The notes under the pieces were generated by a model. That model saw nothing but the letters and a program-made list of their open reading frames with translations. It was not told the DNA's origin and made no database searches. From Bugula neritina (Eukaryota; Animalia; Bryozoa): 64,000 bases of DNA. Positions 26,226 to 63,419 of the stretch are shown piece by piece. Each line of letters starts with the position of its first letter. Position 1 is the first letter of the stretch. The position numbers were made by a program, and so were the translations under genes. The stretch is from positions 9,081,751 through 9,145,750 of the forward strand of contig OZ037773.1 in NCBI GenBank assembly GCA_964035545.1. The letters are read 5' to 3'.

Positions 26226-29200
26226 ATGTTCTCCAAAATCCTTTGGCTAAAGTTGCTGCTGCTGTGTTTGCAGAGCGGGTTTGCGGTGTGCAATGTTTTA
26301 GGTAAGTATATATAGTTCTATTTGCATATAAATTAAGCAATATTTAATGATTTGAAAATGTTTAGTTCATATCTGTCATTATGTAGTTCATTGCTTGCTT
26401 TAATATACTTATATAATATAATACAGTATAATATAATATAATATAATATAATACAATGCAATATAATATAATATAATACAATATAATATAATATAATATA
26501 ATACAATATAATATAATATAATGTAATACAATGCAATATAATATAATACAATATAATATATTATATAATACAGCAATAAAATATTATTACTCATACTAAG
26601 CCTTATTTGAACTTTACGTATATGTGTATTGCTTGCTATGAATACATAACAAATGTTTGCTAACCTAAGATATTAGTGTTATATATTTATTATTATATTT
26701 TACAATTGAAGCAGGCCTCTGATGATTCCGTGCAGCTGCTTCCCTATGTTGATGTTATTTTCAGAGTTACCCACTTGCTCTAGAGGTGCTGTTACCAAAG
26801 ACGTCACTATTGCCAGTAACAGCTCAATGATTACTCAGAAATCTAATGCTAGGAGTTTAGCTGAATGCGTCACTAACTGCATGATGTCATATCCTGTTAA
26901 ATGTAACTCGGCGTTCAAAGACAAAACGAGCAGTGAGTGGAGAACACATAATGGTGACATATTTTAGTGAAAAACCCTTTTTATAAGAAATCAAACTTTC
27001 TCCTTATCATTGAATAAAGTATCAATAACAAAATGGTTTGGTTGATAAATAATCATGTATTGTTTTATCAGCCTCGAGATCCTTAATTTTGAGCTTTATA
27101 ATATTGTACATGTATGTTATAGTTGGTAAAAAACAAAACCTTATGATTGCATAAATACTGAATCTTTTAGATCTCTGCTATGAAATGAATGGCACTGAGA
27201 CTACAACTAATCCTTCTGATGACCAAATGTACAGAGTTGGACATCTAGTAGAAATTATGACCACTGGAAAGGTATAGTGTTGTATTTCCTAGTTAAGCAC
27301 TGTTTGTTCTCCCCAGTTATTTAGTATTCTAAAGCATCAAAATATTACCAAAAAATGAGATATTTTTCCTAGCAATGAAAACCTACCAATTTCAAGTTAA
27401 GAAAAGAAACCCAGAATCATTGTAGGAAAGGATTTGTATGTTATATATAGATGCATGTTTGTTGTTTAACTTAAAATGATCCCACCAGGAATTTAAGATG
27501 ATTTTTTTTTTAAAAGAAGTGATAAATTCTAATTTTTGGCAACAAATGTGTGTACCTTGTTCTCTCGTCACAGAGTAACATTAATCTATTGCAGAAGGGA
27601 GATTGTGGTGGGGGACAATGTCCTGATAACCAGGTCTGCATGGTGGGCTGTGCTGGGGAAGAACAGGTTCCTCCAGTGTGTCTTGGTAAACTTCATCTCT
27701 CTCTCCATTGTTACCCAGTCATACAAATCTATTGTAATAAATAGAGTAAACCTCAGGATTTAAAATGTTATAGGTGTCAGATAATAACATGCTTGATGCA
27801 CTACACTACAGTTGCACTATACTATATATACCACAGTACAATACACTGGACTACACTACACTGCACTGCACCACACTACACTACACTACACTACACTACA
27901 CTACACTACAATACACTACACTACACTACACTACACTACACTACACTACACTACACTACACTACACTACACTACACTACACTACACTACACTACACTACA
28001 CTACACTACACTACGTACACTACAGTTGCACTATACTATATATATACCACAGTACACTACACTGGACTACACTACACTGCACTGCACTGCACTAAACTAC
28101 ACTACGTACACTACAGTTGCACTATACTATATATACCACAGTACACTACACTGGACTACACTACACTGCACTGCACTGCACTGCACTGCACTGCACTGCA
28201 CTGCACTGCACTGCACTGCACTGCACTGCACTGCACTGCACTGCACTGCACTGCACTACACTACATTACAATTCACTACAGTTGCACTATACTACAGCAC
28301 ACTATACTACATGTTATGCTGCGCTGCACTTATGCACTACCTATACATTATTATAACATTACTATTGAATAAATTGAATTTAATTTATAAAAACAGTTTT
28401 TATGTGAGTATAGAAAATTTGTATTTGGTAAAATTTCATGACCCAGTATTTAAGTCTGTGTTTATGTGGACTTTAGCTGATCAGCGGACTGAGTGTGACC
28501 TGATGAATGAATACGGAGGAATCAGACACTACTGGAGTGACGAGGTATCTGATGCCAGAGATAATGGTGTCATCATGGTTAGTATATACGGGTAGATTAT
28601 ATGTATCTCTACTAGCTGATTCGTCTGGTTTCTGGGTTCAGACTAAATTGCTAAAATGTTAAAAACTGTTATAATTCACGTTGCTATTTGGCGCTTCTGA
28701 AACTCTCTTTTAATAATAAGATGAAAACAATTTTATTCTAGCATTTTCTACAAGCTAATGTTGGCAATGTTTTCTGACATCGATTTATTGTTACTTTAAC
28801 TGATATGAAATAAACAGGTATATACACTTATATAGCTTTTAATGACATAAAAGATGATATATTACATAATACAGTGTAATGTACTGTACTTGAATGACAA
28901 AAGCTATCAAAGTAAGCTTTGTAATATTAATTGCGATTTCTGTTAGTAATACATTATTACAACTGTAAGCACTGAATATTGCAAAGATGAAAGGGTCCAT
29001 GTTTGTAATTCATAATAGTAACAGAAAAAATTAATTACTTAATATCATACAGCAGATTTAAATTATTGATTGAAGTTTTATCTTCCTACAAGGGTTAGTG
29101 ACTTCGTAAATAAGAACTGGTTCAAACATAACTTATTGGTAAACCAGAATAATAGTGAGTAAATATAATAAGTATATAGTAGATAAATCAAGTATATAGC

Positions 29201-32200
29201 ATAGTATAGTATAGTAAGTACAGTGTAATGAGTATAGTATAGTATATAGCTGTAGGTTTTGATGCTACAATACTAATATGTTATGCTACAGTACTAATTT
29301 CTGTTGTTGTGGTAGAACTGATTTCTGACGCTACAATGCTAATTTCTGGTGTTACAGTATGCCACTTACCCAAAGCAAAGCAGTAATTCTGGCCTTAGAG
29401 TAAGTATTAACATGATTGTGCGAGGACAGTACATGCAACTAGATGCCTGTAGTCGCTGGTACCTAAACTTCAACGGTGATGAGTGCAGAAACCCAGCAAC
29501 CATTGAACTGGTGGTTTATGCACTGAACAGCCCAAGTGTTCATCATGCTATTGACAGTAAGTATTGTAATTGTATTAAGTTGTGAGTTTTTTTGTTCAAA
29601 AAGTTAAAACAAATTGAGTAAGCAAATTGAAGCAGCATAAATCTTTCAACTTTGTAGAGTTAGAAGATTTCATAATATTATAAGGTATAAGTAAATGTAT
29701 TTTGTTTTCAAAAATTAGAGCTTTGATGCAAGAAAAGTGGCCTACACCAAATAGCTAATTACATTGATAGTATTTTCAGCATTTGCAGTTTTTGCCTATA
29801 TAAACAAAAAGGTACTTGCATTTACTATTAGTTGGGTAAACTTTTTCATTCATACATATATATCGTATATGACATATTAATTTTTCTAAAAAGTTCTGCG
29901 TGCTTTCTCATTAACTAATACAATTAGTAACAGAAAGTAAATATGGTTGTAGTTGATGGAACCTGCTATGGTATAGCATCTGGGGATGTTCTGATAGAGC
30001 TGGTGGTACAGAATACCTGTGGGGGACGTACTCCTAGCGACCCTCAGTCGGGATGGAATTCTGCCAGAACTATGGTGATGATGGAAGTGACATCATCGAG
30101 TCATCTCTTGCAGAGTCAGTAATTCATTCAGTTGTACTCTTTTTGTAAAGAAATAACTTAATGGCCGACTACAGTAAAGCTTGTGAGCTGGGATGTTTTA
30201 GTACACCTTTTAAAAAGTTGTGACAAGTTTAAGTTTAAATAATATAACTTGTATCTTACAAAGGTGATGATCCATAAAATGCAAAATCTTCTAGAATATT
30301 AAAATCTCTTTTATGATTTATATAATTTTAATAATTATTGGTTCCCAGGCAGACTGTGCTAATAACATGCTATTATTCATACATTTAGTTCAAAAACACT
30401 TAACTTTGTTTATTGAAATACGTTAACTATGTCATAATCATAGTGTCAGTTTTTAATACGAAAGTTTTTTACTTGTAGAAACAGGTATTGATGTTGTTTT
30501 TAGTTCAGTAACTGTGCTAGCAACAATCAAGTTTCATGCATGACCTTGAAGCATATCATACAGAAGTAGCAGCATTTAAATTGATGATTAGTCTGAATTG
30601 ACACCTAACTTGTGATATGTGTCAACCTTTTCACATGTGTCAACTTGTCACATGTGTCATGTGTCAACCTTATTACATGACACATGTCAGCCTGGTGACA
30701 TGTCTCACGTGTCAACCTTGTTACATGTTTCATATGTCAACCTTGTCGCATGAGACATGTCAGCCTGGGGACATGTCTCATGTGTCAACCTTGTTACATG
30801 TGTCAAGTTGTCACATGTGTCATGTGTCAACCTTATTACATGACACATGTCAGCCTGGTGACATGTCTCATGTGTCAACCTTGTTACATGTGTCAAGTTG
30901 TCACATGCTTCAACGTGTCAGCCTTATGATATATTTCAACCTTATGATATTTGTCAGAGTAAAAACAAGCTCCCACATTCTATATCAAGTGCTTGGTGTA
31001 CATACTTTACTTCCATCGAACAGTGCACCATTTACACACTATCACATAAAATGCTTTGAAACAGCAATGGCTGTTGATGTTTATAAGATTAGTAACCTTA
31101 CTTTAGTGTAATTAAATTGCATCACTAAGTTATTGCAACATTGCATTGCAATAAAAGTGAGCTACAGAACAACAAATAATGTTGAAAATATTACTAATGG
31201 CAGCAAACATACACAAGTCCTGTCCACAACTGAACGTCTTTAACTACGATTATCAAGTATGGAGAGAAAAGATAGATGTCACTACAAATCTGGAGCTGGG
31301 TGGCTTGCTGATAAATGTATGTAGATATGCTTTAAAGGAACATGTACTGGTATAATTATTTGACATGAACTGATAGTCATTGTATATTGTCATTTAGTAT
31401 TGTATGCAGTAGAGTTAGTATTGTATGCAGTAGAGTGTATTGTATGCAGTAGAGTTAGTATTGTATGCAGTAGAGTTAGTATTGTATGCAGTAGAGTGTA
31501 TTGTATGTAGTAGAGTTAGTATTGTATGCAGTAGAGTTAGTATTGTATGCAGTAGAGTTAGTATTGTATGCAGTAGAGTTAGTATTGTATGCAGTAGATC
31601 AGTGTGTGAATGTAGAAAGCGAACCTTATACCATGTGGTTGCAAATAGTCGAGAATAGATCACTATGTGGTTGCAGATAATTGATTATAGAGAACCATGG
31701 GAAGTGTAGACAATAGTTTATAGATTACGCTGTGATTGTAGAAGATAAATTATGAGAAGTTTGCTGATGATACCAGTCTAAGAATAAAGTACAGTGCAGT
31801 AACTACAGTTGTAAACTATGACTTAACAAGAGTGTTCTGTGCCAGATGGTAAGTGTGAACAGTATGCTTAATTCTACAATTCTTTATACAGCAAGACTGT
31901 GCATAGATAGTTATGTGACGTAGTCATGTGACATAGTCATGTGACAGGATGTGCATATATAGGGCTACTCTGTTGCAGGTATGTAAAGATTAATGGAGCA
32001 GAGTGTACGCCCACGCTAGACTACATCATATATGCAGATACACCGAGTCAATTAACTTACTGGGAACACTTTAGTACCGGAAGAACAGGTGCTCTGTGCC
32101 ATAATATATATATATATATATATATATTTTATATATATTAATTTATACATATGTTCTAACATCATTGCTGATATAGCCGAGGGAATCTGTGACAACAATC

Positions 32201-34487
32201 TTTCAGCTGGCATTCACTCAATCGAGATATGGATGGGACGTTGTGTTGGAGTCCGAACTGACCAACCAACTAGAACTATTTCTGGTGACTTCAACTCCCC
32301 TTCACGCCTGCATATAGAGGAAGTGAGAAGAGACCATGCTGTTGATGGAGGTACAGTAATATTGTGATAAATCACAAAATGGTATGACAGGTGTTTGTAA
32401 TATTTTATATGGGATTGTAATATAATTCAAGTGCTGAAACATATCCCTGTGTCATGCTACACAGAACTTAACTATACAATAAATAGCAAATTGCCATTTA
32501 GCTATACAATAAACAGCAAATTTTTATCTAGCTGTGCAAAAACCAAAAAATTGCCATTTGCTATCCAAAAAGGGTTTGATACATATAATACATAGAATTA
32601 GCCTTATTTCTACTTTTCCAGCTTCTGTAGTTGATCTGCCTTTTGTACAATGCGCTCTACTGGTTGCAGTTTCGTCCAAAGCTGAGACTTACAGAAGCCA
32701 CACAGGAAAGATATTCAGACACTTTTGGCTCTGGTCTCTACCGCATTTTGGAAATCAGGGAGAGATTGCATCTTTGACATACTACAAAGAGTTTGGCGAT
32801 ACCGCATTGAGGTTGACGGCCAGTGGCGTCCACAAAATAGAGAGTATCGTTGGAAACGGACTCTGTGGAAGATGGTAAGCTGGTATAGAGAAAGGGGAGG
32901 AGGGGAGAGGGAGGAGGGGGAGAGAATGGAGGAGAGGGGGAGGCAGAGGGGGATGAGTCTATTTGAATATTAGCTCTTTAATTTATTTTCTGTTATATAT
33001 TAAAAATCCTTGTTAATTATAGAACTTTAAACAAACTACATTTGAACAAAGGTATACAGACTCAAAGTTTTAAGGTGATAATCATATTGATTTAAGCTTA
33101 GCATGACACATGCAATGCTTGCTTTTTACTTCCTTCAACATTGCCACAATTTGATATATGAAATAATAAATGTTTTATCACTTTCCATGCAATTAGAGCA
33201 GTTATGAGATGTAGGACTACACATCTGATAGTAAAATTCTGAGCTTCACTATAGTTGCATCTAAAACTAAGTTAAATATTGCTTCAAACTCCTTCAATAT
33301 ACTATAACATTTTTTGTTAACATTGTGACTATGACAGCAACTAAAACTTTAACTCTAGAATGTTACTGACGTGACGCTCAATGTTTTATTCATAACACAA
33401 CATATTTTTATTATATTTATAATTTGATACTAGTCAAAAACAATTGGCTATACTAACTAATTTTGTGGATTGTTTATGCATGTGTTTTTATTTTATTTAT
33501 GTTAGACAAGAAAATCTACAATAAAATTGACAATTTTAAATTTTGGCAACTATTCAACCATTTTGTACTTTAAAATTTATTTTTATTCCTCCAAACCCTC
33601 ATTTTTGCAATATATATTAAAGCTGTTATAACATTATATATAAAAAGAAGGAATTATCTATGTATATCTACGTATAAAAACATTGTGTTTAATTAATTGT
33701 TCAACATTTACTTGACAATTAGTTACAGTTTAAAATCTCTGTAATACTTTCATAAATTATACTTATTGATTACAGTTTTCATATAAATTATAATAATTTA
33801 TTATGCTTGTATTTAGGTATTTTATGATAGATGGATCTGAGTGCACAACTCCCGGTAGAATTGAGGGAGTGACCTTTATTAAAGCTAACACCAACTACCA
33901 CCACCCCAAACAAGGTGAGTGTTTCTACCAGATGATGTATAAAGATTACATATGAATGGGCATACAACTCCATAGCAGTATATGTCACTATGTTTCCAAG
34001 CTTTGCATTATAAGAATGAAATTTTTATTCGATGCATGTTGGGAAAGAGTTGCATTGAATGAAACTAGAACCATAAGTTCATGCAAGCCGAAACCACAAA
34101 TTCATCGTAAGAGCATCCATTCCCAAAATGCGAAGAAATGGAACGTGTTCTTGTTACGCTATGTATACTACAGATACTATAATTTGCGTATTTTTACTGA
34201 ATATTAATAGTATTGTAATTTCTCAATAGTTTTAATTGTGACTTATGTATAGCAACATTGCAGTGAGCGGAATATGTCTGGACATACCAAGAGGAGACCA
34301 CATGGTATCCTACATGGCTATCGGTTGCTTAAACCAAGACATGGCAATGTTCTACACTGGATTTGCCAGCTCCTTCCATATATTTGTGGAGGAGTTGAGA
34401 ATTGAGTCTTCTACGATATGTTCTGGTCTCCCCGTCAACTGTGATATACCTCTACTGCCCCCTGACCTAGCTTCTTACCTGGACTAG
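26226..34487 (+). CDS. Secreted protein, paralogue A: signal peptide + PAN/Apple-like + Cys-rich module + 3x CTHRC1 C-terminal domain, ~642 aa, 14 exons
   Basis: Exons 26226-26301, 26765-26932, 27171-27271, 27595-27685, 28477-28577, 29358-29556, 29953-30114, 31204-31316, 31742-31848, 31979-32088, 32177-32350, 32670-32874, 33817-33914, 34264-34487 sum to 1929 nt, open. Signal peptide MFSKILWLKLLLLCLQSGFAVC. PAN-like SLAECVTNC..CNS..LCYE. Three repeats of K..S/T.LR..C.RWY...G.EC...(I)E..V.G.C...G...C..GWNS/GDFNS/GFAS..IEE match the CTHRC1 C-terminal domain pattern. Confidence 0.88.
26410..26570. repeat. (AATAT)n microsatellite
   Basis: Visible. Confidence 0.9.
27799..28310. repeat. (CTACA)n/(CTGCA)n pentamer satellite
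   Basis: Visible; explains the HYTTL/HCTAL ORFs. Confidence 0.95.
30617..30925. repeat. Composite ACATGTGTCAACCTT minisatellite
   Basis: Visible. Confidence 0.9.
31395..31598. repeat. 21-bp minisatellite (GTATTGTATGCAGTAGAGTTA)
   Basis: About 10 copies. Confidence 0.95.
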
Positions 34488-34873
34488 CTTTATCAGCTAT
34501 TTCAAATGACAACCAGAAAACTTTTGCTTTTTGATTAAGTAGTTGCAGAAGTTGTGGTAGAACCATAGACATTGTGATTGTTGTTCATCATTGTTCTATG
34601 TTGTTGTATTCACAGTGTAGTCAGTATTTGACTATTATCTAATCTCTACGACCTGTTTGCTGTAAAAATAAGTATATCATAAAAACATTGTTACTTGATG
34701 ACTTATAAAAATAAGGAGACTATAAACTTATAAATAATGTAGTCTGTTGTTTCTCATATTTAATTTGTTATTGAAGATATAATTAGCTATTCTATGGCAT
34801 GCTTATTCATAACTGGGTATGATTAGGTGTAATTAAGATGCAAAAGCAAATTTTCCGTCAAATTTAATTGCAG

Positions 34874-34920
<47 letters not shown>

Positions 34921-36800
34921 TTAATAGTAACTATTATTATTTAAAAAAGATTTAAAAAAATATTCTTTTGTGTTAAGAAAGTATGGTTTGTGCCTTTGTC
35001 ATGGATAATTTGTGGATAAGATACATTTTTAATAATTTTTGTAATTTTTGCTATGCACAGTTAAGGCTGTCCATTGTTTGTGTAAAAATAATTGTATGAA
35101 CAGTGAGATTATAGAGTGTTTGTTATAAATAAAGGCTTCGCTTTTCTCACTATTTGAGATCAAGCTTTTGTGCCCTATTAGCTATTACCAATTCGGCTTA
35201 TAGTTACATACGCACAGTGCTGATAACTGCAGAAACTTGAACAGATAGTTTACTTTAAAAGCTAAGCAGACTGCTACATTGAAAGCTTGCTTTTATTAAT
35301 GCAAATCTAAGATTTTGAATTGTTGGTGCTTTTCTATTGCTCATACCAATTGCAAAAATTATTAGCCAGGCATGGAGGAGAAAACCACCAGAACCCATAG
35401 ACTATTATAGTTATATGGTTACAAAACTGGTTGAGAAAAAAGCTCAGGTGTATCAGGAAATTGTGTTTGAAAAGCATTGATTGGATATATATTTAAAAAT
35501 CAACTTTGTCAAACTGTTGTACAATTTTATGGATCAAAGGCTAAAAGAAAGAGTAGTCTAGCCTGTGATATCAAAATGATAAACAGAAAGTTGGTGCTTC
35601 TAAGCTAAGCAAATGACTTGTTTGAGTGATCATTGAGATCATGAGTGGTCAATTTGAAACTGGAGTAGATAAAATTTAATTGATAACGAAAAACATAGGC
35701 AGTTTGATATTTTCATCAATTGTGTCAAACAGAAAAATTTTAAATACAGAAATTATCTATGTATCACAGGTCGAATACTGTGGCAAGCATCAACTTAACT
35801 GATCAACTACAGAAACATTCAGAAAATCAAAAACTGCGAGAAATACAAAAAATGACTACATTATAGTTGCAGCTGTAACATTACGAGAATGTATATAATA
35901 TAACTATATGGAATATTGATTGAAACAAACACATGAACTTTTTGTTTGGAAATTTTGAATACATTTATTGTTGTTGAGTTCTTTTAAAAAATCTAAAATC
36001 TATCAATATATATGTTTTACCCAGATACGATTCTTAGAATTTTATTTTTTAGCTTTTATGATATCAGAACCTATTAGTTTATGCTCTAATTTTCCTCTGA
36101 AACATATGTAATGTTGTGTTATTTACTAAAGCATCATGAGTGGAAAATATTTGCAAAGCAATATTGATGTGTAAAAGTGAGGCTATATAATAGTAATATA
36201 TGAATAAATGTAATGAGAATATAATTATAAACATAAAAAGGGAGTTGTTTGACATCATATACTTAGTTTCTAAATCGATTCAACAAATACAAATACTGTA
36301 AAATGGGAATTAATTAATAATTAATTAATATTTATATACAATTTTAATTTCTAAGAGAACCCTCTGAAGCATTTAATTTAAATACTGGTTTTCTGAATAA
36401 TTAAAAAGTTGCATTCAATTTTATTTCCTTTGAAATTATATATTAGTAAACAAAACTACAATAAGCATTTGGAACATCTATATTTCTTTATGCCAACTAT
36501 AATAAGGCATATTTGCCTTGCTGTTTAGGCTGTTACAAAATAGTCACCAGCTTTTCATTGGTCAATGTTTCAACATTTATGGTCCCAATTACTAAAAAAA
36601 AAAACAGAAAGGCAGTGCGTCAACTAGGAGGTAAATGTTTAGAAGATTGGCTCTTCAAAAATAGAGCATACAAACTATATATTACAATTAATTACTGTTA
36701 TTGCAGTGAAAAGATATTAAAGGTTGGTGTCCAAATATTTGCTAATGTCAAATTATTACTATATTATTTTTTTACTATAGCAATATTAAACTATAGTGTT

Positions 36801-36934
<134 letters not shown>

Positions 36935-36983
36935 ATAGGTATACGAGAAACATTGTTATTTATTACTTTATTAGGTAAAGTAA

Positions 36984-37029
36984 TTACACTGATATTTCGG
37001 GTACCACTGTACCCATCTTCAGAGTAGCA
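36984..37029 (-). ncRNA. Mirror copy of the minimal hammerhead motif
   Basis: Exact reverse complement of 37035-37080 within the palindrome. Confidence 0.65.
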
Positions 37030-37033
37030 TTCA

Positions 37034-37080
37034 TTGCTACTCTGAAGATGGGTACAGTGGTACCCGAAATATCAGTGTAA
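37034..37080 (+). ncRNA. Minimal type I hammerhead ribozyme motif (Penelope-like-element type)
   Basis: Core CTGAAGA at 37042-48, one extra T, stem II GGGTAC-agtg-GTACCC at 37050-65, GAAA at 37066-69, palindromic stem III A-TA-T, cleavage-site C at 37073. Stem I: ttgc(t)act pairs with agtgtaa. Confidence 0.7.
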
Positions 37081-37159
37081 TTACTTTACCTAATAAAGTA
37101 ATAAATAACAATGTTTCTCGTATACCTATTTATAATCAAATTGCTAGCTCGTAAAGATA

Positions 37160-37230
<71 letters not shown>

Positions 37231-49029: not shown

Positions 49030-52000
49030 ATAGGGCACACATAGTATACATCAACTCATATGGGGCAGATATAGTATACACAGGCTTATGGGGATCGCAT
49101 ACATGCAGCATATATGAGCTCATAAGGGGCACATATAACATATCTAGGCTCATAGCAGCACATAAATAGTATATGAGCTCAAAGATGGCACATAAAATAT
49201 ATACAAGTTCATAGGGGGCAGATATAGAATATATAAGCTCATAGGGGGCAGATATAATATATATATATATAAGTTCATAGGAGGCAGATATAATATATAT
49301 AAGTTCATAGGGGGCAGATATGGAATATATAGGCTCATAGGGGGCACATAAAATATATATAAGTTCACAGGGGGCAGATATAATATATATAAGTTCATAG
49401 GGGGCAGATATAGAATATATAGGCTCATAGGGGGCAGATATAAAATATATAGGCTTATAGGGGGCAGATATAGAATGTATAGGCTTATAGGGGGCAGATT
49501 AGAATATATATAGGCTTATAGGGGGCAGATATAGAATATATAGGCTCATAGGGGGCAGATATAATATATTATATAAGCTCATAGGGGGCAGATATAATAC
49601 ATATATATAAGTTCATAGGGGGCAGATATAATATATATATAGGTTCATAGGGGGCAGATATAGAATATATAGGCTCATAGGGGGCAGATATAATATATAT
49701 AAGTTCATAGGGGCAGATATAATATATAAGTTCATAGGGGGCAGATATAGAATATATAGGTTCATAGGAGGCACATAAAATATATATAAGTTCACAGGGG
49801 GCAGATATAATATATATAAGTTCATAGGGGGCAGATATAGAATATATAGGCTCATAGGGGGCAGATATAATATATAAGCTCACAACAACTCAAATATAAT
49901 TTTTTAACGGAGATGCAGGCCAGATTTCTATACAAGTTCTACCTCAAGCCCTGGCACAGTTATAGCAACTGAAATGATATTATCATCACTGTAAATAAGT
50001 GTTTCCAACAGTGAAAGAGGGCACATATCTAGGTTCATAGCGGGCAGATATGGAGTATATAGGCTCATAGGGGCAGATATATTATATATATATATTCAAG
50101 TTCATAGGGGGCAGATATAATATATATATAGGTTCATAGGGGGCAGATATAGAATATATATGCCCATAGGGGGCAGATATAATATATATATATAAGTTCA
50201 TAGGGGGCAGATATAATATATATATAAGTTCATAGGGGGCAGATATAATATATATATATAAGTTCATAGGGGGCAGATATAATATATATATAGGTTCATA
50301 GGGGGCAGATATAATATATATATAGGTTCATAGGGGGCAGATATAGAATATATAGGTTCATAGGGGGCAGATATAGAATATATAGGCTCATAGGGGGCAG
50401 ATATAATATATAAGTTGATAGGGGGCAGATATAGAATATATAGGTTCATAGGGGGCACATAAAATATATATAAGTTCACAGGGGGCAGATATAATATATA
50501 AGTTGATAGGGGGCAGATATAATATATAAGTTGATAGGGGGCAGATATAGAATATATAGGTTCATAGGGGGCACATAAAATATATATAAGTTCATAGGGG
50601 GCAGATATAATATATATAAGTTCATAGGGGGCAGATATAGAATATATAGGCTCATAGGGGGCAGATATAATATATATAGGCTCATAGGGGGGCAGATAAT
50701 AAATATATAGGCTCATAGGGGGCAGATATAGAATATATAAGTTCATAGGGGGCAGATATAGAATATATAAGCTCATAGGGGGCAGATATAGAATATATAG
50801 GCTTATAGGGAGCAGATATAGAATATATAAGCTCATAGGGGGCAGATATGGAATATATAGGCTCATAGGGGGCACATAAAATATATATAAGTTCATAGGG
50901 GGCAGATATAGAATATATAGGCTCATAGGGGGCAGATATAATATATATATAAGTTCATACGGGCAAATATAGAGTATATAGGCTCATAGGGGGCAGATAT
51001 AGAATATATAAGCTCATAGGGGGCAGATGTAGAATATATAGGCTTATAGGGGGCAGATATAGAATATATAAGCTCATAGGGGGCAGATATAGAATATATA
51101 GGCTCATAGGGGGCACATAAAATATATATAAGTTCACAGGGGGCAGATATAATATATATAAGTTCATAGGGGGCAGATATAGAATATATAGGCTCATAGG
51201 GGGCAGATATAAAATATATAGGCTTATAGGGGGCAGATATAGAATGTATAGGCTTATAGGGGGCAGATTAGAATATATATAGGCTTATAGGGGGCAGATA
51301 TAGAATATATAGGCTCATAGGGGGCAGATATAATATATTATATAAGCTCATAGGGGGCAGATATAATATATATATATAAGTTCATAGGGGGCAGATATAA
51401 TATATATATATAGGTTCATAGGGGGCAGATATAGAATATATAGGCTCATAGGGGGCAGATATAATATATATAAGTTCATAGGGGCAGATATAATATATAA
51501 GTTCATAGGGGGCAGATATAGAATATATAGGTTCATAGGGGGCACATAAAATATATATAAGTTCACAGGGGGCAGATATAATATATATAAGTTCATAGGG
51601 GGCAGATATAGAATATATAGGCTCATAGGGGGCAGATATAATATATAAGCTCACAACAACTCAAATATAATTTTTTAACGGAGATGCAGGCCAGATTTCT
51701 ATACAAGTTCTACCTCAAGCCCTGGCACAGTTATAGCAACTGAAATGATATTATCATGATCACTGTAAATAAGTGTTTCCAACAGTGAAAGAGGGCACAT
51801 ATCTAGGTTCATAGCGGGCAGATATGGAGTATATAGGCTCATAGGGGCAGATATAATATATATATATATATTCAAGTTCATAGGGGGCAGATATAATATA
51901 TATATAGGTTCATAGGGGGCAGATATAATATATATATATATAAGTTCATAGGGGGCAGATATAATATATATATATATAAGTTCATAGGGGGCAGATATAA

Positions 52001-52775
52001 TATATATATAGGTTCATAGGGGGCAGATATAGAATATATAGGCTCATAGGGGGCAGATATAATATATATAAGTTCATAGGGGGCAGATATATAATATAAG
52101 TTGATAGGGGGCAGATATAGAATATATAGGTTCATAGGGGGCACATAAAATATATATAAGTTCACAGGGGGCAGATATAATATATAAGTTGATAGGGGGC
52201 AGATATAGAATATATAGGTTCATAGGGGGCACATAAAATATATATAAGTTCATAGGGGGCAGATATAATATATATATAAGTTCATAGGGGGCAGATATAG
52301 AATATATAGGCTCATAGGGGGCAGATATAACATATATAGGCTCATAGGGGGCAGATATAGAATATATAAGTTCATAGGGGGCAGATATAGAATATATAAG
52401 CTCATACGGGCAGATATAGAGTATATAGGCTCATAGGGGGCAGATATAGAATATATAAGCTCATAGGGGGCAAATATAGAATATATAAACTCATAGGGGG
52501 CAGATATAGACTATAAGCTCATACGGGACAAATATAATATATATAAGTTCATAGGGGGCAGATATAGAATATATAGGCTCATAGGGGGCAGATATGGTAT
52601 ATATAGGCTCATAGGGGGCAGATATAATATATATAAGCTCACAACAACTCAAATATAATTTTTTTAACGGAGATGCGGGCCAGATTTCTATACAAGTTCT
52701 ACCTTAAGCCCTGGCACAATTATAGCAACTGAAATGATATTATTATCAATGTAATTAAGTGTTTCCAACAGTGAA
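49030..52775. repeat. Large ~27-33-bp minisatellite array (core CATAGGGGGCAGATATA) with three copies of a ~140-bp unique spacer (higher-order repeat)
   Basis: Over 100 units visible. The spacer TCACAACAACTCAAAT...CCAACAGTGAAA starts at ~49880, ~51651 and ~52639. Confidence 0.95.
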
Positions 52776-53103: not shown

Positions 53104-56100
53104 ATGATTCTGGGACTGATTATATTAAATTTACTTTGTTCTTCAAAAGCTAACTATACTCAAGGTTAGTATTTTTCACATTTATAAAAATTTTCTGCTA
53201 AAATCTCTTACTAAAACGATTCTAGAATTCTAATAAAACATAACAATAATGCACTTAAAAATTATTTATATATACTTAATTAAAACAGATATTTTTCTTA
53301 TAACACCTCCTTGGCAAAAATCATAATTATTTTACAGAAATATATTATTATATTATAAATTAGGTTATTTTTAGTTCAGTTTCACCTCTCAACAATTTTA
53401 TAACTGAGCCATGACGGGCATGTTTTGACAGTCATGCAGTTGGTAAAACTTAACGAGCGTTCTTATAATAAAAATCCTAATCTAACCCTAATGTGGGAGC
53501 TTTTATTTTTGCAAAAAATCAAATTTATACAATTGAGTAAAGCAACTATCAAAATATTTAATTATTTGGAATTTCACAAAAGTAATACTGTGTCTTAAAA
53601 TCATGCTAAGAAGATTTCTAACAGTTTAAAGCTTTGCGGACTCTTTTGTAATTTTCTGAATATTTTCAATATATCCTAAATATTTAAGGAGAGTTTTAAT
53701 ATTATATGTGACATTTAGTACATCTTCAGTATTGTATACATTAAAGTTTAATACAAGTTAGAACATAGTTTTTGTTGACAGATTTCTCTAACTGTGGAAC
53801 AGCAAGTTTACAAGAAAATGGAACCCTAAATACCTCCAGCCCACTGATCTGGAGAAAGCTACAGACAAGAAGTATTGTTGAGTGCACAGTAGAATGTTGG
53901 AAGAGCTTTCCATTTCAGTGTAATGCAGTTTTCAGAAATGATAAAGGTACATCTCTTACTATTTTTAAGAAAACAGAAAATCAAAAGACTAAATTTATAG
54001 TTATAAAAATTTTACAAGAAAATGATTAAGACTCCCAAGACCTATTAGTAGCGAAACAACACCCTAACACTTTACATTCTTGTGCAGTATAGGCTACTTT
54101 CTGTATTAAACATTGTTTTTGTTATAGTTTTCATTTTGCTGTATTGCGCAAATATATTTTAGATATTTATATATGATGAGGTTAGTAATTGGTTGAAATA
54201 AAAGAATTATGCAAAATAAGAGTATTTTATTGCACAATTCTGTACAAGTATGGAAGGCATTAATAATATAAAATGACGTGTTATACAAGCAAACTTCATG
54301 TGCAAATATAATCAATATTTTATTTGTTATATTTTAATTATGAAGGTAAACAACTTTATTTGTTTAAAGTTATGTCTTAGTTTCAGTCAATATTTTTAGA
54401 TAATCAGTAGAACATATTTACATCTTATAGTTTTCAGCAGTCACGCAAACTGCAGCATGTTTTAATTCAAAGCTTTCACTTACCAAAAACAATGATATTC
54501 GAAATTTAAATGCTGACGTCAAAAATCTTGAAACCTAAAACCATGATTGATTTTTAAACTGCATAAATTAATATTCAAACGGAAAACCAATGCTTCAGTT
54601 TTTGACTTTGCATGTCAAGCAACTGACCATATTTGGTATTTAACCATAAAACCTATAATATGGTCATGTGACTGACACTTGATCATGTGACTGAAACTTG
54701 GTCATGTGACTGATATAGCAGTTATTTTACAGGCACCTGCTACGAGTTGAATGTAGAGGAGGCAGATGTAGACATAGAACTGTTTAATGCCAGTAAAAAT
54801 ACTAAAGACATTGTAGCTGGACAGTTTATCAAACTAATAAAGAAAGGCAAGGTAATAACATTGGAAATCTAACAACACAGTTTTACAATGAGGGGCACAA
54901 ACTGGTATTATAGTTAAACTGAATTATCCTTGAAAAATTAATTTTTATGATCAGTTCTTGGTGCACATCAATTAGTTAATTTGCGCTCAAGTACATCTTC
55001 ACTAGCTTTTATCCTTTACCAAGTTCTTTTATAGCATTTAGATAAAAGCAGTTTACTGCTTTGTTTATACTTATTGAAACTTTTAGGCGTTTGAAAGGCT
55101 TGCAAGTTAATTATTAGATCAAAGTTATGCCAGCAGGAATTTTTTTAGGAATTATGCTCACATATAGTTGGAAACTTTTAGAGATTTATTCTATCCAAAT
55201 GAAAAGCTATATATGTTGGACTAAGGTTTACCAATAAGTTCACTACCCAATCATAGATGATGTAAATGTAATCTAAAACCAACTTTAACAGATTTGAATG
55301 CTATAAGAGCTTAATTAATGTCGTACTAATTAATTGTCTATTTTTAGCTATAAGAATTAAGTATTATACTAAATACTTATACCTGCTAGGAAACATAATT
55401 ACAATTTGTGCCCTTAATTCAAAGCATAATGAAATGTCCATTTAAATGATTTTAAAACTATATAGATTATACAGGCACAGCTTTCCAAGTTTTATTGGTA
55501 GCCCAGTATATTTTGTAATTCCTGTTAACTGCTATATAGCTAATAAATAACCTAACATATTTTGACTGCAGAGAGCTGATTGTGGGGAAAGAAACTGCAC
55601 AGAAAGTGAGATCTGCATTAAAGGTTGCGGTGAGGAGAGTCTGGCAGAACCTGCATGTGTGGGTAAGTGTAATCTGCATGTGTGGGTAAGTGTAATCTGC
55701 ATGTGTAGGTAGGTGTAATCTGCATGTGTGGGTAAGTGTAATCTGCATGTGTGGGTAAGTGTAATCTGCATGTGTAAGTAAGTGTAACCTGCATGTGTGG
55801 GTAGGTGTAATCTGCATGTGTGGGTAAGTGTAATCTGCATGTGTGGGTAAGTGTAATCTGCATGTGTGGGTAAGTGTAATCTGCATGTGTGGGTAAGTGT
55901 AACCTGCATGTGTGGGTAAGTGTAATCTGCATGTGTGAGTAAGTGTAAACTGCATGTGTAGGTAAGCGTAAACTGCATGTGTGGGTAAGTGTAATCTGCA
56001 TGTGTGAGTAAGTGTAAACTGCATGTGTAGGTAAGCGTAAACTGCATGTGTGAGTAAGTGTAAACTGCATGTGTAAGTAAGTGTGACCTGCATCTAATAA

Positions 56101-59100
56101 TTAAAAAAATGTTTCTAGGCATTATCTACTAGAAAGCATAATAGCAGGAGCGCGGTTTATTTCATTATATTCTAATTTATAATAGCCTTATTGTTATAGC
56201 GATCGTGTAATATTATTGTACTGTGTTAACTATTTGTGACAAACATATTTTATAGAATTGCTTCACATTACAGTTTCTGCTGATTAATGAATTATGGTTA
56301 AAGAAAGTGAAATAACTTCGAGCTAATGAGTAAAATATGTAAAAGATGATACTTTTTTTATAAACAACATTTAAATGGTTTTAATTTTAGTTTCAACTTA
56401 TTTGTTCATATTGGAATTTAATTGATTTCATTATGTTCTGTAATAAATGTCACACTCATGTCACATAGCACCTGTCACATAACATCTGTCACATAACACC
56501 TGTCACATAACACCTGTCACATAACACCTGTCACATAACACCTGTCACATAGCACAAAGAGGATACACATGGAGTATTATAGCTGGAACATGCCCAAACT
56601 TTTGACTATCATTTGGGTTTGACATGTAAATTTCGTATTTGGTTCATTAAAAGGTAAAAATAAACATAAACAGCAAAAAAACTTGTTTATTTTTGGAAAT
56701 TGCATTACTATAATATGGTATGAAAAATTTATGCTCTAAGAATTTTGCTTTAATTATTAATGAACAAAATTTAGAATAAAACTTATTAAAAGAGATAAAA
56801 TATTAATTATAAACTATATCAAGTTTATGGTTTTAGCCGATCAAACTCGTTGTACATTGGAGAATGAATACGCTAACATTCGGCACTACTGGACCCCAAC
56901 AATATACGACAATAGAAATGCCGGAGTAGTGATGGTAAGCTGAAAGTTTTGACTTTAGTTATTTTTTGACATGCCACTTTTTACTAACACCTCTGTTAAG
57001 ATCTGTTACAGCTCTATAATTGAAAGAAAAAATATCTTTCTGCAAGTGATTTTGCATTATTAGTAAAAATGAAAGCGTGTAACTTTATTCTCTTTTTAAC
57101 CATCCTATTAATTGTTTTGTATATTGAAAGAATATAGTCCCTAATTAACTAAAAAATAATTATGTCTAAAATGAATCCATCAAGTAGCCTATATGCCTAA
57201 TCATTCTACATGCGTGGGGAGCTTTCCCTCACTATAATATTTTAATATAGACTGTTCAATAGGCACTTATTGCTTGATTCACAGTTTTATCTTAATTATA
57301 TGAAATATATATAGGCATATAGGCAATTACAAATTGATGTTTATTAAATACATTGTAACTATTGCATGATGGGATAGTTTTTATATTTGGCCAACTTACT
57401 TAACTGCATTATATAAGTAGCTTTGCTGAATAGTTGCCTTTGCATGCAGTAACCTTCTCTCTTAGCTCAAATAGCAGCTATAGTATAGCAGTACAAGCTA
57501 TTAGATATTTCAAATGCTTGTAGGGTAGAGCTTGTCATTAACCTATCATAGCAAGTTATAGTCACCGATCTACTAATACTATAGCCGCATTATATTCCAT
57601 GAGTTTTTATATTGTATTCTTCAAAGGAGGTTGCTATATTTCATTAATTTATAATACACCATAGCTGCAGAGTTTTTGAAAAACTTCCAATCTACTACTA
57701 TTATAAAAAAACTCACGCAAGTTTACAGTTGCTATATCACTGCGTGAGAAACCACCCATTGGAAAGAGTTTTTGCTAAAACAGGCTAAGGACTTATTTAA
57801 CTGAGACACAAGAGCAATTATGACTGGATGCTCTTCCTAACATCACCAATGGCCTTTGTCAGGGCTGAACCCATGACTTCGTGCTTACTAGGCAAGTGCT
57901 CTAACCCCTAGACCGCATCTGCTCCCTACTAGGACTATTATGTATCTGATGAATGACTTAGGAAAAACTCAAGGTTTTTAAACAGTACTGTACTTGTTTA
58001 GACTGCGACTTATCCAAAGAGTAGGAGTGATTCCGGGTTGAGAGTGATCATACATATGACAGTTGGAAGTATAGGTGACAGTCAGTACCATTGTCATCTC
58101 TGGTACCTCACCTTTAATGGTGTTCCTTGCTCACAGCCCTCCTCCATCCAAATGTCAGACGTGGCCATCAAAGCTGGCAAACACAATCAAGCAATGGATA
58201 GTAAGTTGGGAACAGTTAACACTTCTCTGTCCAATTATGCCCTTTTTATACAATCAAAGAGTCGGAGATTCAATAAGTCTATATAATATGTTATATAACT
58301 AAACGAGGAATATTGGCAGAAAAAGCTCAGTAGAAAAAAGAAGTATCTGATTAGGTAGCACCTATATAATATAGATGGAAACTTCATTTTTCTGTACTTT
58401 AAAATGCCTTTTCACAAAGTGAATTTGCCAGTATATTGATTAAAAACTGTCATTCTTTAGACTACTAATACTACAAAACATATGTAAGCAATAAGTGGAA
58501 ACTTTTAATATGCAATAAGTAAGTAATCTAAGAAGTAGTTTTGATACTTGTCTCCATATAAAAAAGCTTAACACATTCTATAAATAGTAACACATTCTAT
58601 AAATAGCAACATGTTCTATAAATAGTATCACATTCTTGAGATAGTGACACACCCTATAAATAGCAACATGCACATTCTATAAATAGCAACATGTAAGCAC
58701 CTCCTCTTCACACAGTGGACGGCACATGCTACGGTCTGAATGCAGGAGACATATTGGTGCAGCTGGTGGTGGAGTCCTGTGATAGGTACGGCTTTGGTTA
58801 CAGACAAACCGGCTGGAACTCTGCCAGAACCATGCTGATAATGGAGATGGTGCCACAGCAAAATTTTGAGGGTCAGTTACTTTCTTTACAGAGTTTGGCG
58901 TTTCTAATTCCTAATTCCTAACTCCTGATCTGTATCAGAATATTGACTTTTCTGGGAAATGAAGTTAAAGCTTATCATTTCTTGTAAATATAAATTTTTA
59001 AAATTATCTATTTCATGTTTATTTGGTCATTGACATTGCCTCAATTATTATCTCAAGCTTTATAATACTCAGTTCAATTTGATAAAAAGTTTCAAGCTAA

Positions 59101-62100
59101 AATTATTGAAATTGATTTTACTAACAATTGCAAGTTTATTAAAAGCATATATGCATATTGTAATTTAGCTGAAACTCGAAAATGTATTTTCAGAACCCCA
59201 GTTTAATAACTGCCCTCTTCTAAACTCATTCAACTATAACTACAAGACGTGGGATGAACACATTTTTGAAACTGTGGATCTTCATGCCGAGAGTATTCTG
59301 ATCAAGGTGCGTCACTTTGATGTGATGTCGTGTGTATAAAATGCATGAGAAAATATCTTTTCACCTAAACAGGAGTAAAAGCAAGAGCTGTCTACAATAA
59401 TAAAAAAATGAGAAAGCCACACTATTTAAACTAACCGGTTCACAGGTTCTGGTCAAAAAACAAAGCAGCAAAAATGAGTAGGATGCAGTATTGAAAAGTC
59501 TTATTAATTCAAAAGTTTACGATAAACATATTTGCTATTATAAAAAGAAATTCCAATTTCTTTCCTCTAATTAATAAAAAATTGTCTTTTGTAGGAAATG
59601 GAATATGCAAAGCTGTCAGATGACACAAGTCTACGAATAAAGTACAGCGCTTTAACCGCAGTTTTTATTCAGAACTCAGGATTCAGCCATTGCGCTACAT
59701 GGTATGTCTAAACTGTTTTCTATTTTAGTGACAACATTAAAGTAACAAAAGCTACACTGCCTTAGCTTAATGGTTATAAGAGAACTAGAATAGTTAGTGC
59801 TAGATAATGTGGCAAAGTCTCAGTAGGGTCATTACTAATGACATATAAATAGCTTATAGTGACAATTGCTCTTGTGTTTAAAGCAGATTGAAGCCCCTTT
59901 AACCATTTTAAGGTGAAAGGCACAGCTATTAGTTCTTTTAAAAATTTCTATTGTCATCCATTTGAATAACAAAATAAGCTAAAGTGACTTTATAGGAGAA
60001 CCAAATTATTTTAAAGTTAAGAAATAACTGTGGTTGACTATAATATATATAATTATATTATTAGAATAATATAATATATAACTATATATTAATATTTTGT
60101 TAGGGTTATTGTTAGAATTGTTTTTGAAGCTGCTTACAGATACAAGTAGAACTAATTGAATTGATTATTTGTCTTGCCACACTATTTGCAGTGTCTCAAT
60201 TTGTTTTGTCAATTAGATTTCTTGTTATATATACAAGTTGTAAACAGTTACATTTATGCATGGTTGCTTGTGCTAATGTATGCTAAATGTGTGGTGACTC
60301 TAAATATAAATAAGGTTCTTTTTGTGTCTTCATTAAGGTTTGTTGAAATAGACGGAAATAAGTGCAGCCCTACACTGGACTACGTGTTGCATGTCAACCC
60401 ACCCAACCACCAGACCTACTGGGAAGACCATGGGAGAGTGAGAACATGTGAGAATATATTTAATAGTAAAATTGAGTTTTTAATAGCAACACTGCAGTCA
60501 TATAAGTTTGTTAAATATATAAGTTTAGGTAAACCACATGTGTGCTTTTAACTTCATCTTATTTGATTAAAAATAAAAATTACAAATATTAAATAATGAA
60601 AAAAAAATTCACAATCAGAATATCAATTATATTATTAGTCAAGCAGCTACAATATATTTTAATTTTGACACAGATAACACCTTTTAAACTGATTTTAACT
60701 GAAGTATTACGAGTTTGTATGTTCATAAACACTTGAAGAGATATAGCTGTAGCGAAATAAGTTTATTCATTCACTACTATAGACCGTATATATAGCGTAA
60801 TACTTTTAGTTTAACTGCGCAAGTTATCCATGTACTCAGCATATATGTTACACAATATTGATGGTTCAAAACGCTTTTAATCAAGATCTTTTCACACAAT
60901 CACAAAGATTGAGTTTCATCAATATTTTTTTAAAAATCATCCTAAAAATCTAATAACAAACACAAAGCCTTACTAAAAGATTCGAAGCACTAAATTAATA
61001 TATTAACCTGTATGAAGCTAGTTTAATAGTTGACTGCTTAACTATACTTATACGCTACAATCCATACATACACTGTTTTATAATGTATATATTTCGTGAA
61101 TTTTACATCAAAAATAGCATCAAATAAATTAGATAAAAATATACTTAAGGGTATTTTACAAATTCAAAATAACATAATTCTATTGTAGAAATGTGCTTTT
61201 TTATAAATTGATTTGCTTATTTTGCTAGATAAGATCAAAACCTAAGCAGTGGTGGTTTAAAATATGCACAGAAATTTGAATTCTATATATAGCTTTTATG
61301 TTTATTACAATTTTGCTAATTAGCCGACAAAGATCTAAATTGTTATAATACTTGCCTGTAAATGCAATAGAGTACGTAAGATACAGATCCTAAAATGTAT
61401 AAGGAAATTTTGTCTCAATTTAGTGGAGGGTATATGTGACAACCCCTTATCAGCTGGAGAGCATGTGATAGCCCTGCGCATTGGCAGATGTGTGGATGAA
61501 TATGATCAGCCAACTCTTGTTGTCAGTGGAGGACTGAACACTTATTCACGTCTGCATGTAGAGGAAGTACGAAGAGGTCATGTGACTGACGCAGGTTCGT
61601 TATTTTTTGCAGTTGGCAGAAAATTATATATTTTTATACAGATTTTTGTCATCAAACCTTCCAAGAAATAGATGATTTACACAAACCAATTTCAAAGTTT
61701 TGGATAAAAATAGACAAAGAGCTGTAGTTATTACTCCATGTTATATTAATGAAGTTTAAACGCGGTTGATTTTTATAAAGTGTCAACATGCTTCTATGGC
61801 TATGTTAACTTCAGTTACTTAAAGTTTGACCTGATGACAACATGAGTAATAAACACTCTACGTATTATAAGGATGCCAGTAAGAGCTGATGCTGTTATAC
61901 TTAGCTGTGTCCTGCATGCTATATCAGTATAGGCTGTGTCTTTAACAATATTTTCAGTTAGTATATAATATATTTAGCTATACTATTGCAACTGGCACAA
62001 GTTGAATGCTATACATGAATAAACTCAAAATTTAGAGCATTGTTAGGCCTACTATTATCATTACTGTAAGCTTAGCATTTGACTTGCAGTGCTTTCAAGG

Positions 62101-63419
62101 AACAGAAAGATGTACAGAAACCTCGTAGGCAACCTGGAACGGATCCACTACTGGGGAGAGATCAAGGAGGATGACGAAGCAGATCTCTACTCTGTGACGT
62201 ACAAGAAACAGCTCTCTACAACCGGAGTTAGAGTGACCTCTAGTGGTGGACACCGTGTAAAGTTTAACTTCAACACTTCCGAGTGTAGCAGATGGTAAGT
62301 GATAAAGCAATAGGTGTACATAATAGATTTTATAAGTTTTATTAACCTAATGAGTGCCTGAATAAATTGTGCAAGATCAGCAAACTATAGTTTTTAATTT
62401 TATGAATTGTAGTTTGTCTGACGAGTGGCAAAAATAATCTTAAATTGTTTTAATATATTATTTATTCAACAAGACCTCTAAATCTTTTTAATTGGTTAAA
62501 AAGTAAATTTTTTGATTGCTTGTGCAGCAGTTTATTTTTAACACAAATTTAGTTATTTTACTTAAAGGTACTTTAAAATAGATGGTGCTGAATGTACAAA
62601 CCCGGGAGCTATAGAAGGGCTGTTCTATTACAACATGAATAGTGAGGTTTACTACCCCATGCAAGGTTTGATAACTCCAAGTTAGAAATTCTACAAATCG
62701 ACACCTTTATAACTTATATTTGCATAATTTCACTGATAATGAGCGTTAAAACTGAAATAATGTGTTTTCTATAGTTCAATGCAGTGTAAACCAGAAGTTT
62801 AGGTCTTAATTTCTTTTATAGTTTATAGTTATTTTATTTTTACTTTTTTTTAACTAAAGCAGAGTTAGTTAAATTTCAAATTTATTTATTAAATTTATTT
62901 ATAAAAGGAAAAATTTTGGCTTTCCAACTTTCCTAGTGAGTATTTTTAAATTCCAGCCAAAATTAGATGGAAATGCTTGTCATTAACCAATCACATCAAG
63001 TTTACTAGTCACTAATATATAATTAATACTATAAGCCTCACCATATTCTGATTAGTTTTAATATTGTAATTATCAAGAGGCAGCACGCAATTACACAGTT
63101 ACGTTGTTGATCTTAGTCTTACGAGAGGCATTTTTGTAATGCTGGATAACTAGAATGTGCATTAAATGTTTTATGTCTATAAATCACATTTGTTTGAAAA
63201 AATACAGTAGATTCTATTGTGACACAACTTTCAGTCAGTGGAGTTTGCCAAGGAGTATCAGCTGGAACTCATGCTATCACATACGCTGTTGGGGCGTGTC
63301 AAGACTACCCCAGTTCTGATGCTAGAACAGGATGGTCCTCATCTTTCAACATCTTCATAGAAGAGTTGAGAGTGGAATCTGTGACTACCTGCACTTCACT
63401 GCCAGCAAACTGTGACTAA
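53104..63419 (+). CDS. Secreted protein, paralogue B: signal peptide + PAN/Apple-like + Cys-rich module + 3x CTHRC1 C-terminal domain, ~625 aa, 14 exons
   Basis: Exons 53104-53164 (MILGLIILNLLCSSKANYTQ), 53782-53946, 54733-54851, 55572-55662, 56837-56934, 58002-58200, 58716-58871, 59194-59306, 59595-59701, 60338-60447, 61424-61594, 62090-62294, 62568-62665, 63235-63419 sum to 1878 nt, open. Intron phases equal paralogue A's and seven exons have identical lengths (91, 199, 113, 107, 110, 205, 98). The last domain, VGACQDYPSSDARTGWSSSFNIFIEEL, closely resembles the CTHRC1 C-terminus. Confidence 0.88.
55651..56093 (+). repeat. 23-bp minisatellite (~19 copies) containing the exon-4 splice donor of paralogue B
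   Basis: Unit CTGCATGTGTGG|GTAAGTGTAAT; the first unit overlaps the exon end at 55662. Confidence 0.95.
56460..56553. repeat. 14-bp tandem repeat (CACCTGTCACATAA)
   Basis: About 6 copies. Confidence 0.9.
57735..57926 (-). mobile_element. tRNA-derived SINE (intronic)
   Basis: Minus strand begins GGGAGCAGATGCGGTCTAGGGGTTAGAGC (A-box-like), then GGGTTCAGCCC (B-box-like), then TGTTAGGAAGAGCATCCAGTC, which resembles a conserved SINE central segment. The 3' end is approximate. Confidence 0.55.
58571..58693. repeat. ~19-bp tandem repeat (ACACATTCTATAAATAGCA) just upstream of an acceptor
   Basis: About 5 degenerate copies. Confidence 0.8.

Follow-up and report, generated by a model that had tools for sequence, protein, structure and literature searches.

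The window analysed here is a stretch of 64,000 nucleotides from Bugula neritina (C9:9081751-9145750 of a 216-Mb assembly, with C9 denoting contig OZ037773.1; eukaryotic, AT-rich, GC content about 33%). It carries two neighbouring genes for proteins that combine a PAN/apple domain, a small cysteine module and three successive CTHRC1_C domains. We consider it fairly probable that these genes are tandem duplicates within a lophophorate family of secreted proteins with a single-chain, three-lobed head, used as a repertoire for recognition, adhesion or matrix formation. To our knowledge, almost all work on CTHRC1 concerns vertebrates, where the protein is a trimer with a collagen stalk and one domain per chain.

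In the proposed model, three jelly rolls of the C1q/TNF type would pack side by side about a pseudo-threefold axis, and one polypeptide would form the head that CTHRC1, C1q and adiponectin build from three collagen-stalked chains. Such a head would be a built-in heterotrimer, because the three lobes differ in sequence and their order is fixed. The PAN and cysteine modules would occupy the place of the collagen stalk.

Gene models

The stop-to-stop frames of the + strand display short coding pieces in two parallel series. Splice reconstruction joins these into gene 1 (26226-34487, 628 amino acids) and gene 2 (53104-63419, 615 amino acids), both on the + strand, each with 14 exons and no internal stop; the pair extends from the ATG of gene 1 at 26226 to the final stop-codon position of gene 2 at 63419. 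Exon boundaries were assigned manually, on the basis of splice signals, the reading phase and the sequence conserved between the paralogues. A dynamic programme relying on splice sites only gave wrong short exons and was rejected in favour of the paralogue-guided boundaries. All 26 introns of the two genes are of the GT-AG type, exons 4, 6, 7, 9, 10, 12 and 13 have the same length in both (91, 199, 134, 107, 110, 205 and 98 nt), and the two proteins are 41.8% identical over 601 columns (expect value E 1e-173). The two intact 14-exon genes of the original prediction, which had been made by a model from the letters alone, were thus recovered where it had placed them, with full open reading frames (ORFs) and GT-AG introns throughout. 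The least certain junction is that between exons 7 and 8 of gene 1, the acceptor of exon 8 being weak; the junction chosen is supported because exon 7 measures 134 nt in both genes. The exons and their support are as follows.

26226..34487 (+): gene 1, PAN, cysteine module and three CTHRC1_C domains; stop-free spliced ORF, colinear with the Lingula and Logan orthologues
26226..26301 (+): gene 1 exon 1, start codon and hydrophobic leader (putative signal peptide); sole strongly hydrophobic 19-mer; phase-1 donor TAG/gtaagt
26765..26932 (+): gene 1 exon 2, PAN/apple Cys 1-4; exon profile finds 33 like exons in the genome; cysteine framework equal to that of the PAN_1-passing orthologues
27171..27271 (+): gene 1 exon 3, remainder of PAN/apple (Cys 5); splice context and alignment with orthologues
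27595..27685 (+): gene 1 exon 4, last PAN Cys and four-Cys module; Cys spacing class as in Lingula and P0021
28477..28577 (+): gene 1 exon 5, first part of CTHRC1_C domain 1; spliced model and domain profile
29358..29556 (+): gene 1 exon 6, central part of domain 1; PF25815 27-84, E 2e-10; indel-free relative to L001
29953..30086 (+): gene 1 exon 7, end of domain 1; PF25815 96-136, E 2.4e-6; 134 nt in both genes
31218..31316 (+): gene 1 exon 8, start of domain 2; weak acceptor, least certain junction
31742..31848 (+): gene 1 exon 9, domain 2; 107 nt, as in gene 2
31979..32088 (+): gene 1 exon 10, domain 2; 110 nt, as in gene 2
32177..32350 (+): gene 1 exon 11, last part of domain 2, then the beginning of the linker between domains 2 and 3; PF25815 97-135, E 7e-4; donor chosen by paralogue conservation beyond EE
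32670..32874 (+): gene 1 exon 12, linker and start of domain 3; PF25815 10-50, weak; 205 nt in both genes
33817..33914 (+): gene 1 exon 13, central part of domain 3; 98 nt, as in gene 2
34264..34487 (+): gene 1 exon 14, end of domain 3, two-Cys tail and stop; PF25815 97-137; tail resembles the C-terminus of P0006
53104..63419 (+): gene 2, paralogue with the architecture of gene 1; 28% identity to Lingula P0004 over 626 columns, E 9e-52
53104..53164 (+): gene 2 exon 1, start codon and hydrophobic leader; spliced model
53782..53946 (+): gene 2 exon 2, PAN/apple Cys 1-4; paralogue conservation and PAN-exon profile
54733..54851 (+): gene 2 exon 3, remainder of PAN/apple; spliced model
55572..55662 (+): gene 2 exon 4, last PAN Cys and four-Cys module; its last 12 nt and donor begin a 23-bp minisatellite
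56837..56934 (+): gene 2 exon 5, start of domain 1; spliced model
58002..58200 (+): gene 2 exon 6, middle of domain 1; PF25815 27-73, E 5.5e-6
58716..58849 (+): gene 2 exon 7, end of domain 1; spliced model
59202..59306 (+): gene 2 exon 8, start of domain 2; spliced model
59595..59701 (+): gene 2 exon 9, domain 2; spliced model
60338..60447 (+): gene 2 exon 10, domain 2; spliced model
61424..61594 (+): gene 2 exon 11, end of domain 2 and linker; spliced model
62090..62294 (+): gene 2 exon 12, linker and start of domain 3; spliced model
62568..62665 (+): gene 2 exon 13, middle of domain 3; spliced model
63235..63419 (+): gene 2 exon 14, end of domain 3, two-Cys tail and stop; PF25815 97-137, E 3.8e-12

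The splice junctions rest on comparison with the paralogue and with relatives. One of these is L001, a 2.5-kb contig from the JGI metagenome 3300002729, which carries the gene 1 locus of a close relative; DNA of such a relative is therefore present in that sample. L001 corresponds to positions 29257-31598 of the window, with 87-94% nucleotide identity in this orthologous stretch of gene 1. Across exons 6-8 the alignment holds no gap in 432 exon nt (identity 94%), and the three introns beside these exons display 99, 216 and 16 gap columns. The rates of non-synonymous and synonymous substitution in the exons are dN 0.036 and dS 0.165 (dN/dS 0.22). Because the exons are indel-free, the introns are gapped and dN/dS is 0.22, the comparison fits a gene 1 under purifying selection.

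It appears highly improbable that the two loci are non-functional or mis-modelled, that is, relics of duplication or exons of separate transcripts which never make up 14-exon proteins. The missing RNA run, the hand-built models, the weak acceptor at gene 1 exon 8, the repeat-rich surroundings and the large insertion between the two genes could be read in this way. Such an explanation is, however, difficult to reconcile with two independent full ORFs, 26 GT-AG introns and seven identical exon lengths, with the indel-free exons and the dN/dS of 0.22 relative to L001, and with the match from end to end to an intron-free contig and to RefSeq models of another species (see below).

Domain architecture and orthologues

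Both proteins display the same order of modules: a hydrophobic leader, a six-cysteine PAN/apple domain, a four-cysteine module, and three CTHRC1_C domains. Matches of single exons to the Pfam family PF25815 (CTHRC1_C) fall into three consecutive sets and run colinear with the profile (best matches E 3.8e-12 for gene 2 exon 14 and 2e-10 for gene 1 exon 6), and a domain hidden Markov model (HMM) built in this analysis finds three full CTHRC1_C domains in each of the two spliced proteins, as had been claimed from the sequence alone. A scan of both spliced proteins found no collagen-type Gly-X-Y run apart from one 9-residue chance match inside the cysteine module, and a hydrophobic 19-mer only at the N-terminus, with no second hydrophobic segment; this bears out the earlier statement that the proteins lack Gly-X-Y repeats and transmembrane segments. 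Pfam Collagen has no match in the orthologues either. The leader is presumably a signal peptide, and the proteins would be secreted.

A profile of six last-exon pieces was run against 1.84 billion representative proteins and gave 328 matches, several of them with three matched stretches. PAN_1 together with three CTHRC1_C domains, all over the Pfam thresholds, was found in P0004 (Lingula anatina XP_013395411), P0010 (Lingula XP_013399537) and P0021, an uninterrupted ORF of 611 amino acids on an intron-free 2.6-kb Logan contig (run SRR32924703). The CTHRC1_C matches of these orthologues reach 250-260 bits in Pfam. The window proteins align with the Lingula proteins and P0021 from the leader to the C-terminus (about 24-30% identity, E 1e-36 to 1e-52). 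The two Lingula anatina loci, LOC106162620 and LOC106165752, thus have the architecture and the cysteine framework of the window proteins; the original prediction had suggested a lineage-specific family, a scope that has to be widened since the architecture is common to a brachiopod and therefore old, whereas the expansion to about 30 genes described below is specific to the bryozoan.

The cysteine framework may be written as 6+4+1, with six cysteines in PAN/apple, four more behind it and one at the start of domain 1, and is identical in gene 1, gene 2, the Lingula proteins and P0021. Two five-cysteine motifs noticed earlier both lie in exon 4 and consist of the last PAN cysteine and the four-cysteine module. 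Exon 2 of the window genes, searched alone, has no match to Pfam PAN_1, because the domain is split over exons 2-4. The orthologues pass the PAN_1 cut-off of 21.4 bits (P0004 25.8, P0021 22.8, P0010 21.7 bits), and an HMM of their N-termini finds gene 1 with 33 bits, gene 2 not being among the reported matches. An AlphaFold model of an orthologue N-terminus is of low confidence (predicted local distance difference test, pLDDT, 59 overall and 76-83 in the core); the top 50 Foldseek rows for it are essentially only PAN/apple domains, with E 2.7e-3 or weaker. Taken together, the PAN_1 matches of the orthologues, the cysteine framework and the low-confidence fold matches support the PAN/apple-like domain of the original prediction, for which a targeting role had been proposed there. 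Pfam scans of the family return CTHRC1_C and PAN_1 only, with no C1q or TNF family signature.

The nearest named protein is KAF6026444 of Bugula neritina (P0006, database name 'CTHRC1'), which has a two-cysteine C-terminal tail in common with the window proteins and matches another locus of this genome with 81-85% amino acid identity. Judged by this identity, the genome is most likely that of a bugulid bryozoan distinct from the B. neritina strain behind KAF6026444. The matching locus lies at C9:10199920-10211135, and a PAN-type exon is found about 5.5 kb upstream of it. Because of this upstream exon, the public model of KAF6026444, with 321 amino acids, two domains and no PAN, probably represents only part of a complete family member. 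This entry and the Lingula proteins, which are 25-30% identical to the window proteins, have automatic annotation only ('CTHRC1' and 'uncharacterized protein', respectively). These proteins are hence already present in public databases, unnamed or mis-named.

Protein homologue searches with P0021, with a five-protein alignment and with P0006 yielded almost nothing new. The word-index search misses relatives as diverged as these, and the taxonomic spread given here is therefore a lower bound. The protein Atlas gave no usable sequence match, and the fold search in the Atlas gave single-domain matches only. Other counts of tandem CTHRC1_C domains were seen as well: 4 in the sponge Oscarella (P0011), at least 8 and 5 in contigs (P0015 and P0022), and several in Symbiodinium (P0140/P0160). 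In P0001 and P0005, two metagenome proteins, each of the three domains has its nearest relatives within the same protein, an indication that triplication occurred there independently.

A predicted single-chain three-lobed head

The three-domain part of P0021 (P0021:150-611, 462 residues) was modelled with AlphaFold2 from a 37-row alignment. Mean pLDDT of the model is 89 and the predicted template modelling score (pTM) is 0.91, which suggests one rigid body instead of beads. The first rows of the Foldseek search are engineered single-chain trimers, namely 4DOU (adiponectin), 5HKJ and 5HZF (C1q), 5KCA (Cbln1), and 4ZCH (APRIL-BAFF-BAFF). VIA-align superimposes these five structures on the model range 5-458 with Z 20.5-24.7 and a root-mean-square deviation (rmsd) of 3.4-3.8 A over 338-353 residues, the values for 5HZF being Z 24.7, rmsd 3.4 A and 340 residues. 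The next best matches are single domains (Z 7.1, rmsd 2.8 A, 129 residues), which cover one domain of the model. Single-domain structural neighbours include many TNF-like lectins, the chlamydial protein Pgp3, and spore proteins.

The engineered proteins (scC1q, adiponectin, Cbln1 and scAPRIL-BAFF-BAFF) have three jelly rolls in one chain, and the same head is predicted for the family studied here. They are laboratory constructs with artificial linkers and are 6-9% identical in sequence to the family, whereas the family would be a natural and ancient version with diverged lobes, its head being known as a model only.

A different arrangement would be one of beads, or one in which each domain trimerizes with its like in two other chains, resulting in a three-chain rod with stacked heads. 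Canonical CTHRC1 and the heads of the C1q family are indeed three-chain assemblies (PMC7058181), and arrays of 4, 5 or at least 8 domains cannot all close into one trimer. Co-folding of the P0021 domains as three chains gave a score of 0.39, and a control with chain 1 replaced gave 0.42, which permits no verdict. However, a pTM of 0.91 over 462 residues corresponds to a fixed mutual arrangement, and it is the whole model, not a single domain, that matches the single-chain trimers with Z 20-25. Only about 13 and about 20 residues lie between the final strand of a domain and the first strand of its successor. Moreover, the three positions have diverged from each other and yet are conserved as positions, and homotypic pairing needs no such thing. 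We therefore judge beads or inter-chain trimers to be unlikely, and a single-chain three-lobed head to be the best-supported reading of the modelling data. The pseudo-trimer of the original prediction is thus upheld in so far as the AlphaFold model matches single-chain trimers; it falls short in that this is modelling only, and on an orthologue only.

Family expansion and domain history

PF25815 has at least 89 exon matches in this genome, in tandem clusters on contigs C9, C5, C3 and C6. A profile of two PAN exons finds at least 33 PAN-type exons in the same clusters; all of the 20 that were fetched are open and have conserved cysteines. Comparison of coordinates shows that at least 15 of the PAN exons have CTHRC1_C matches downstream of them, no more than about 10 kb away and on the same strand. 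From these counts we estimate a family of about 30 genes in this genome. Between 8.10 and 8.50 Mb of C5 there are PAN exons with identical scores (three with 75.5 and two with 73.3 bits), about 30-130 kb apart, which suggests very recent segmental duplications of family members.

A maximum-likelihood tree was computed from 48 domains. In it, canonical CTHRC1 is separated from the PAN family, whose domains all group together (support 92/85). The labels of domains 1, 2 and 3 need 3 changes on this tree versus 7.8 when shuffled, and none of 200 shuffles was as low. The bryozoan domains have long branches and are not resolved beside their Lingula counterparts. The triplication is probably older than the split between brachiopods and bryozoans.

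Possible function

Heads of the C1q/TNF type and PAN/apple domains both serve for binding outside the cell, and glycan-binding TNF-like lectins are among the nearest single-domain structures. We hypothesize that the head and the PAN module of the family have extracellular ligands, with glycans or other patterns on surfaces as the likeliest candidates, and that the approximately 30 diverged tandem copies form a recognition repertoire, which may be immune or lectin-like or serve matrix and adhesion. Such a repertoire would be comparable to the C1q-domain families that have expanded in bivalves.

Alternatively, the proteins could act in the manner of canonical CTHRC1, as soluble modulators of Wnt/planar cell polarity (PCP) or TGF-beta receptor complexes. 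The CTHRC1_C domain is common to both, and the Bugula relative is already annotated 'CTHRC1'. On the other hand, about 30 fast-diverging tandem copies, with neighbours 42% identical, are unlike a conserved cofactor; the domains of the family form a clade apart from canonical CTHRC1 (92/85), the collagen stalk is gone, and a PAN module has been added. Signalling of this type hence appears quite unlikely, and by analogy the copy number and divergence would fit a repertoire for recognition, adhesion or matrix better than a conserved Wnt/PCP cofactor.

Several points weigh against the favoured reading of a secreted three-lobed head with a recognition, adhesion or matrix role. Ligand binding would follow by analogy only. 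A search of sequencing runs for this stretch returned one DNA run and no RNA run. The fold model is that of the orthologue P0021, which is about 25% identical to the window proteins and colinear with them end to end. AlphaFold may echo a learned C1q/TNF trimer geometry, given the shallow alignment (37 rows, about 9 of them with three domains). A profile search of PDB sequences had no match, and no solved CTHRC1-type structure was found by sequence; the likeness to C1q and TNF is therefore structural only. Tandem CTHRC1_C arrays of 2, 4, 5 or at least 8 domains need not always close into threes, and bryozoan domain 2 is very diverged (branch length 1.6).

Relation to known families

Leclere et al. 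2020 (PMC7058181) describe the Cthrc1 family as a collagen repeat followed by a C-terminal domain, which they model as C1q-like. Members of that family are secreted, carry the PF25815 domain and are prone to tandem duplication in invertebrates, like the window family. They have a Gly-X-Y stalk and one domain per chain, in contrast to the window family, which has no stalk, three domains, and PAN and cysteine modules at the N-terminus. A table footnote of the same paper mentions other predicted proteins from Lingula and Phoronis with the domain and without the collagen part. Literature searches returned no paper on the PAN plus triple-CTHRC1 architecture, on its accessions, or on a natural single-chain CTHRC1/C1q head. 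The earlier remark that the architecture is not characterised consequently holds in the literature searched, where only this footnote and unnamed database entries touch on it.

A close parallel is offered by the multi-domain C1q-domain-containing (C1qDC) proteins of bivalves, which are likewise secreted, free of collagen, composed of three tandem jelly rolls and tandemly expanded in a lophotrochozoan. They match Pfam C1q, have no PAN, and bind microbes and pathogen-associated molecular patterns (PAMPs), whereas the window family has CTHRC1_C and PAN. In HcC1qDC6, a bivalve protein with three C1q domains, each domain binds bacteria, lipopolysaccharide (LPS) and peptidoglycan (PMC5519582). Bivalves have large, tandemly expanded families with C1q domains, some members of which have three (PMC10672478). 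No pseudo-trimer is proposed for the bivalve proteins in either paper (PMC5519582, PMC10672478). A 2026 paper on the Lingula shell proteome lists PAN domains among shell matrix proteins, and we take any link to the window family as a lead only.

A wider scenario, which we regard as tentative and rather doubtful, would be that lophophorates evolved a natural, stalk-less, single-chain C1q/TNF 'heterotrimer' from CTHRC1, and that bryozoans multiplied it to about 30 genes for recognition of non-self or of surfaces, parallel to the bivalve C1qDC proteins and vertebrate C1q. If true, the single-chain head would show a route from a three-chain head to one gene product, and would provide a monomeric, expressible form for solving the CTHRC1 fold. 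The family could reveal an overlooked system of recognition or matrix proteins in bryozoans and brachiopods, phyla with poorly known immunity and adhesion, and its description would correct the public labels 'CTHRC1' and 'uncharacterized' on family genes.

Repeats at the locus

A 23-bp minisatellite (55651-56093, 19 copies, 92% matches) begins inside gene 2 exon 4, taking in the last 12 nt of that exon, and has a unit that consists of the exon end and the GTAAGT donor. Since the copies repeat the exon 4 end and its donor, intron 4 starts with about 19 potential donors, most of which would shift the frame. The 18.6-kb spacer between the two genes holds a 3.5-kb array of a 30-bp unit (49110-52641, 115 copies), and a long (TA)n tract lies at 36803-37165. 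In gene 1, introns 4, 7 and 8 contain tandem repeats of (CACTA)n, of 48-90 bp and of 21 bp, respectively (27799-28311, 30637-30907, 31394-31598), and these yield long spurious ORFs in mechanical ORF lists.

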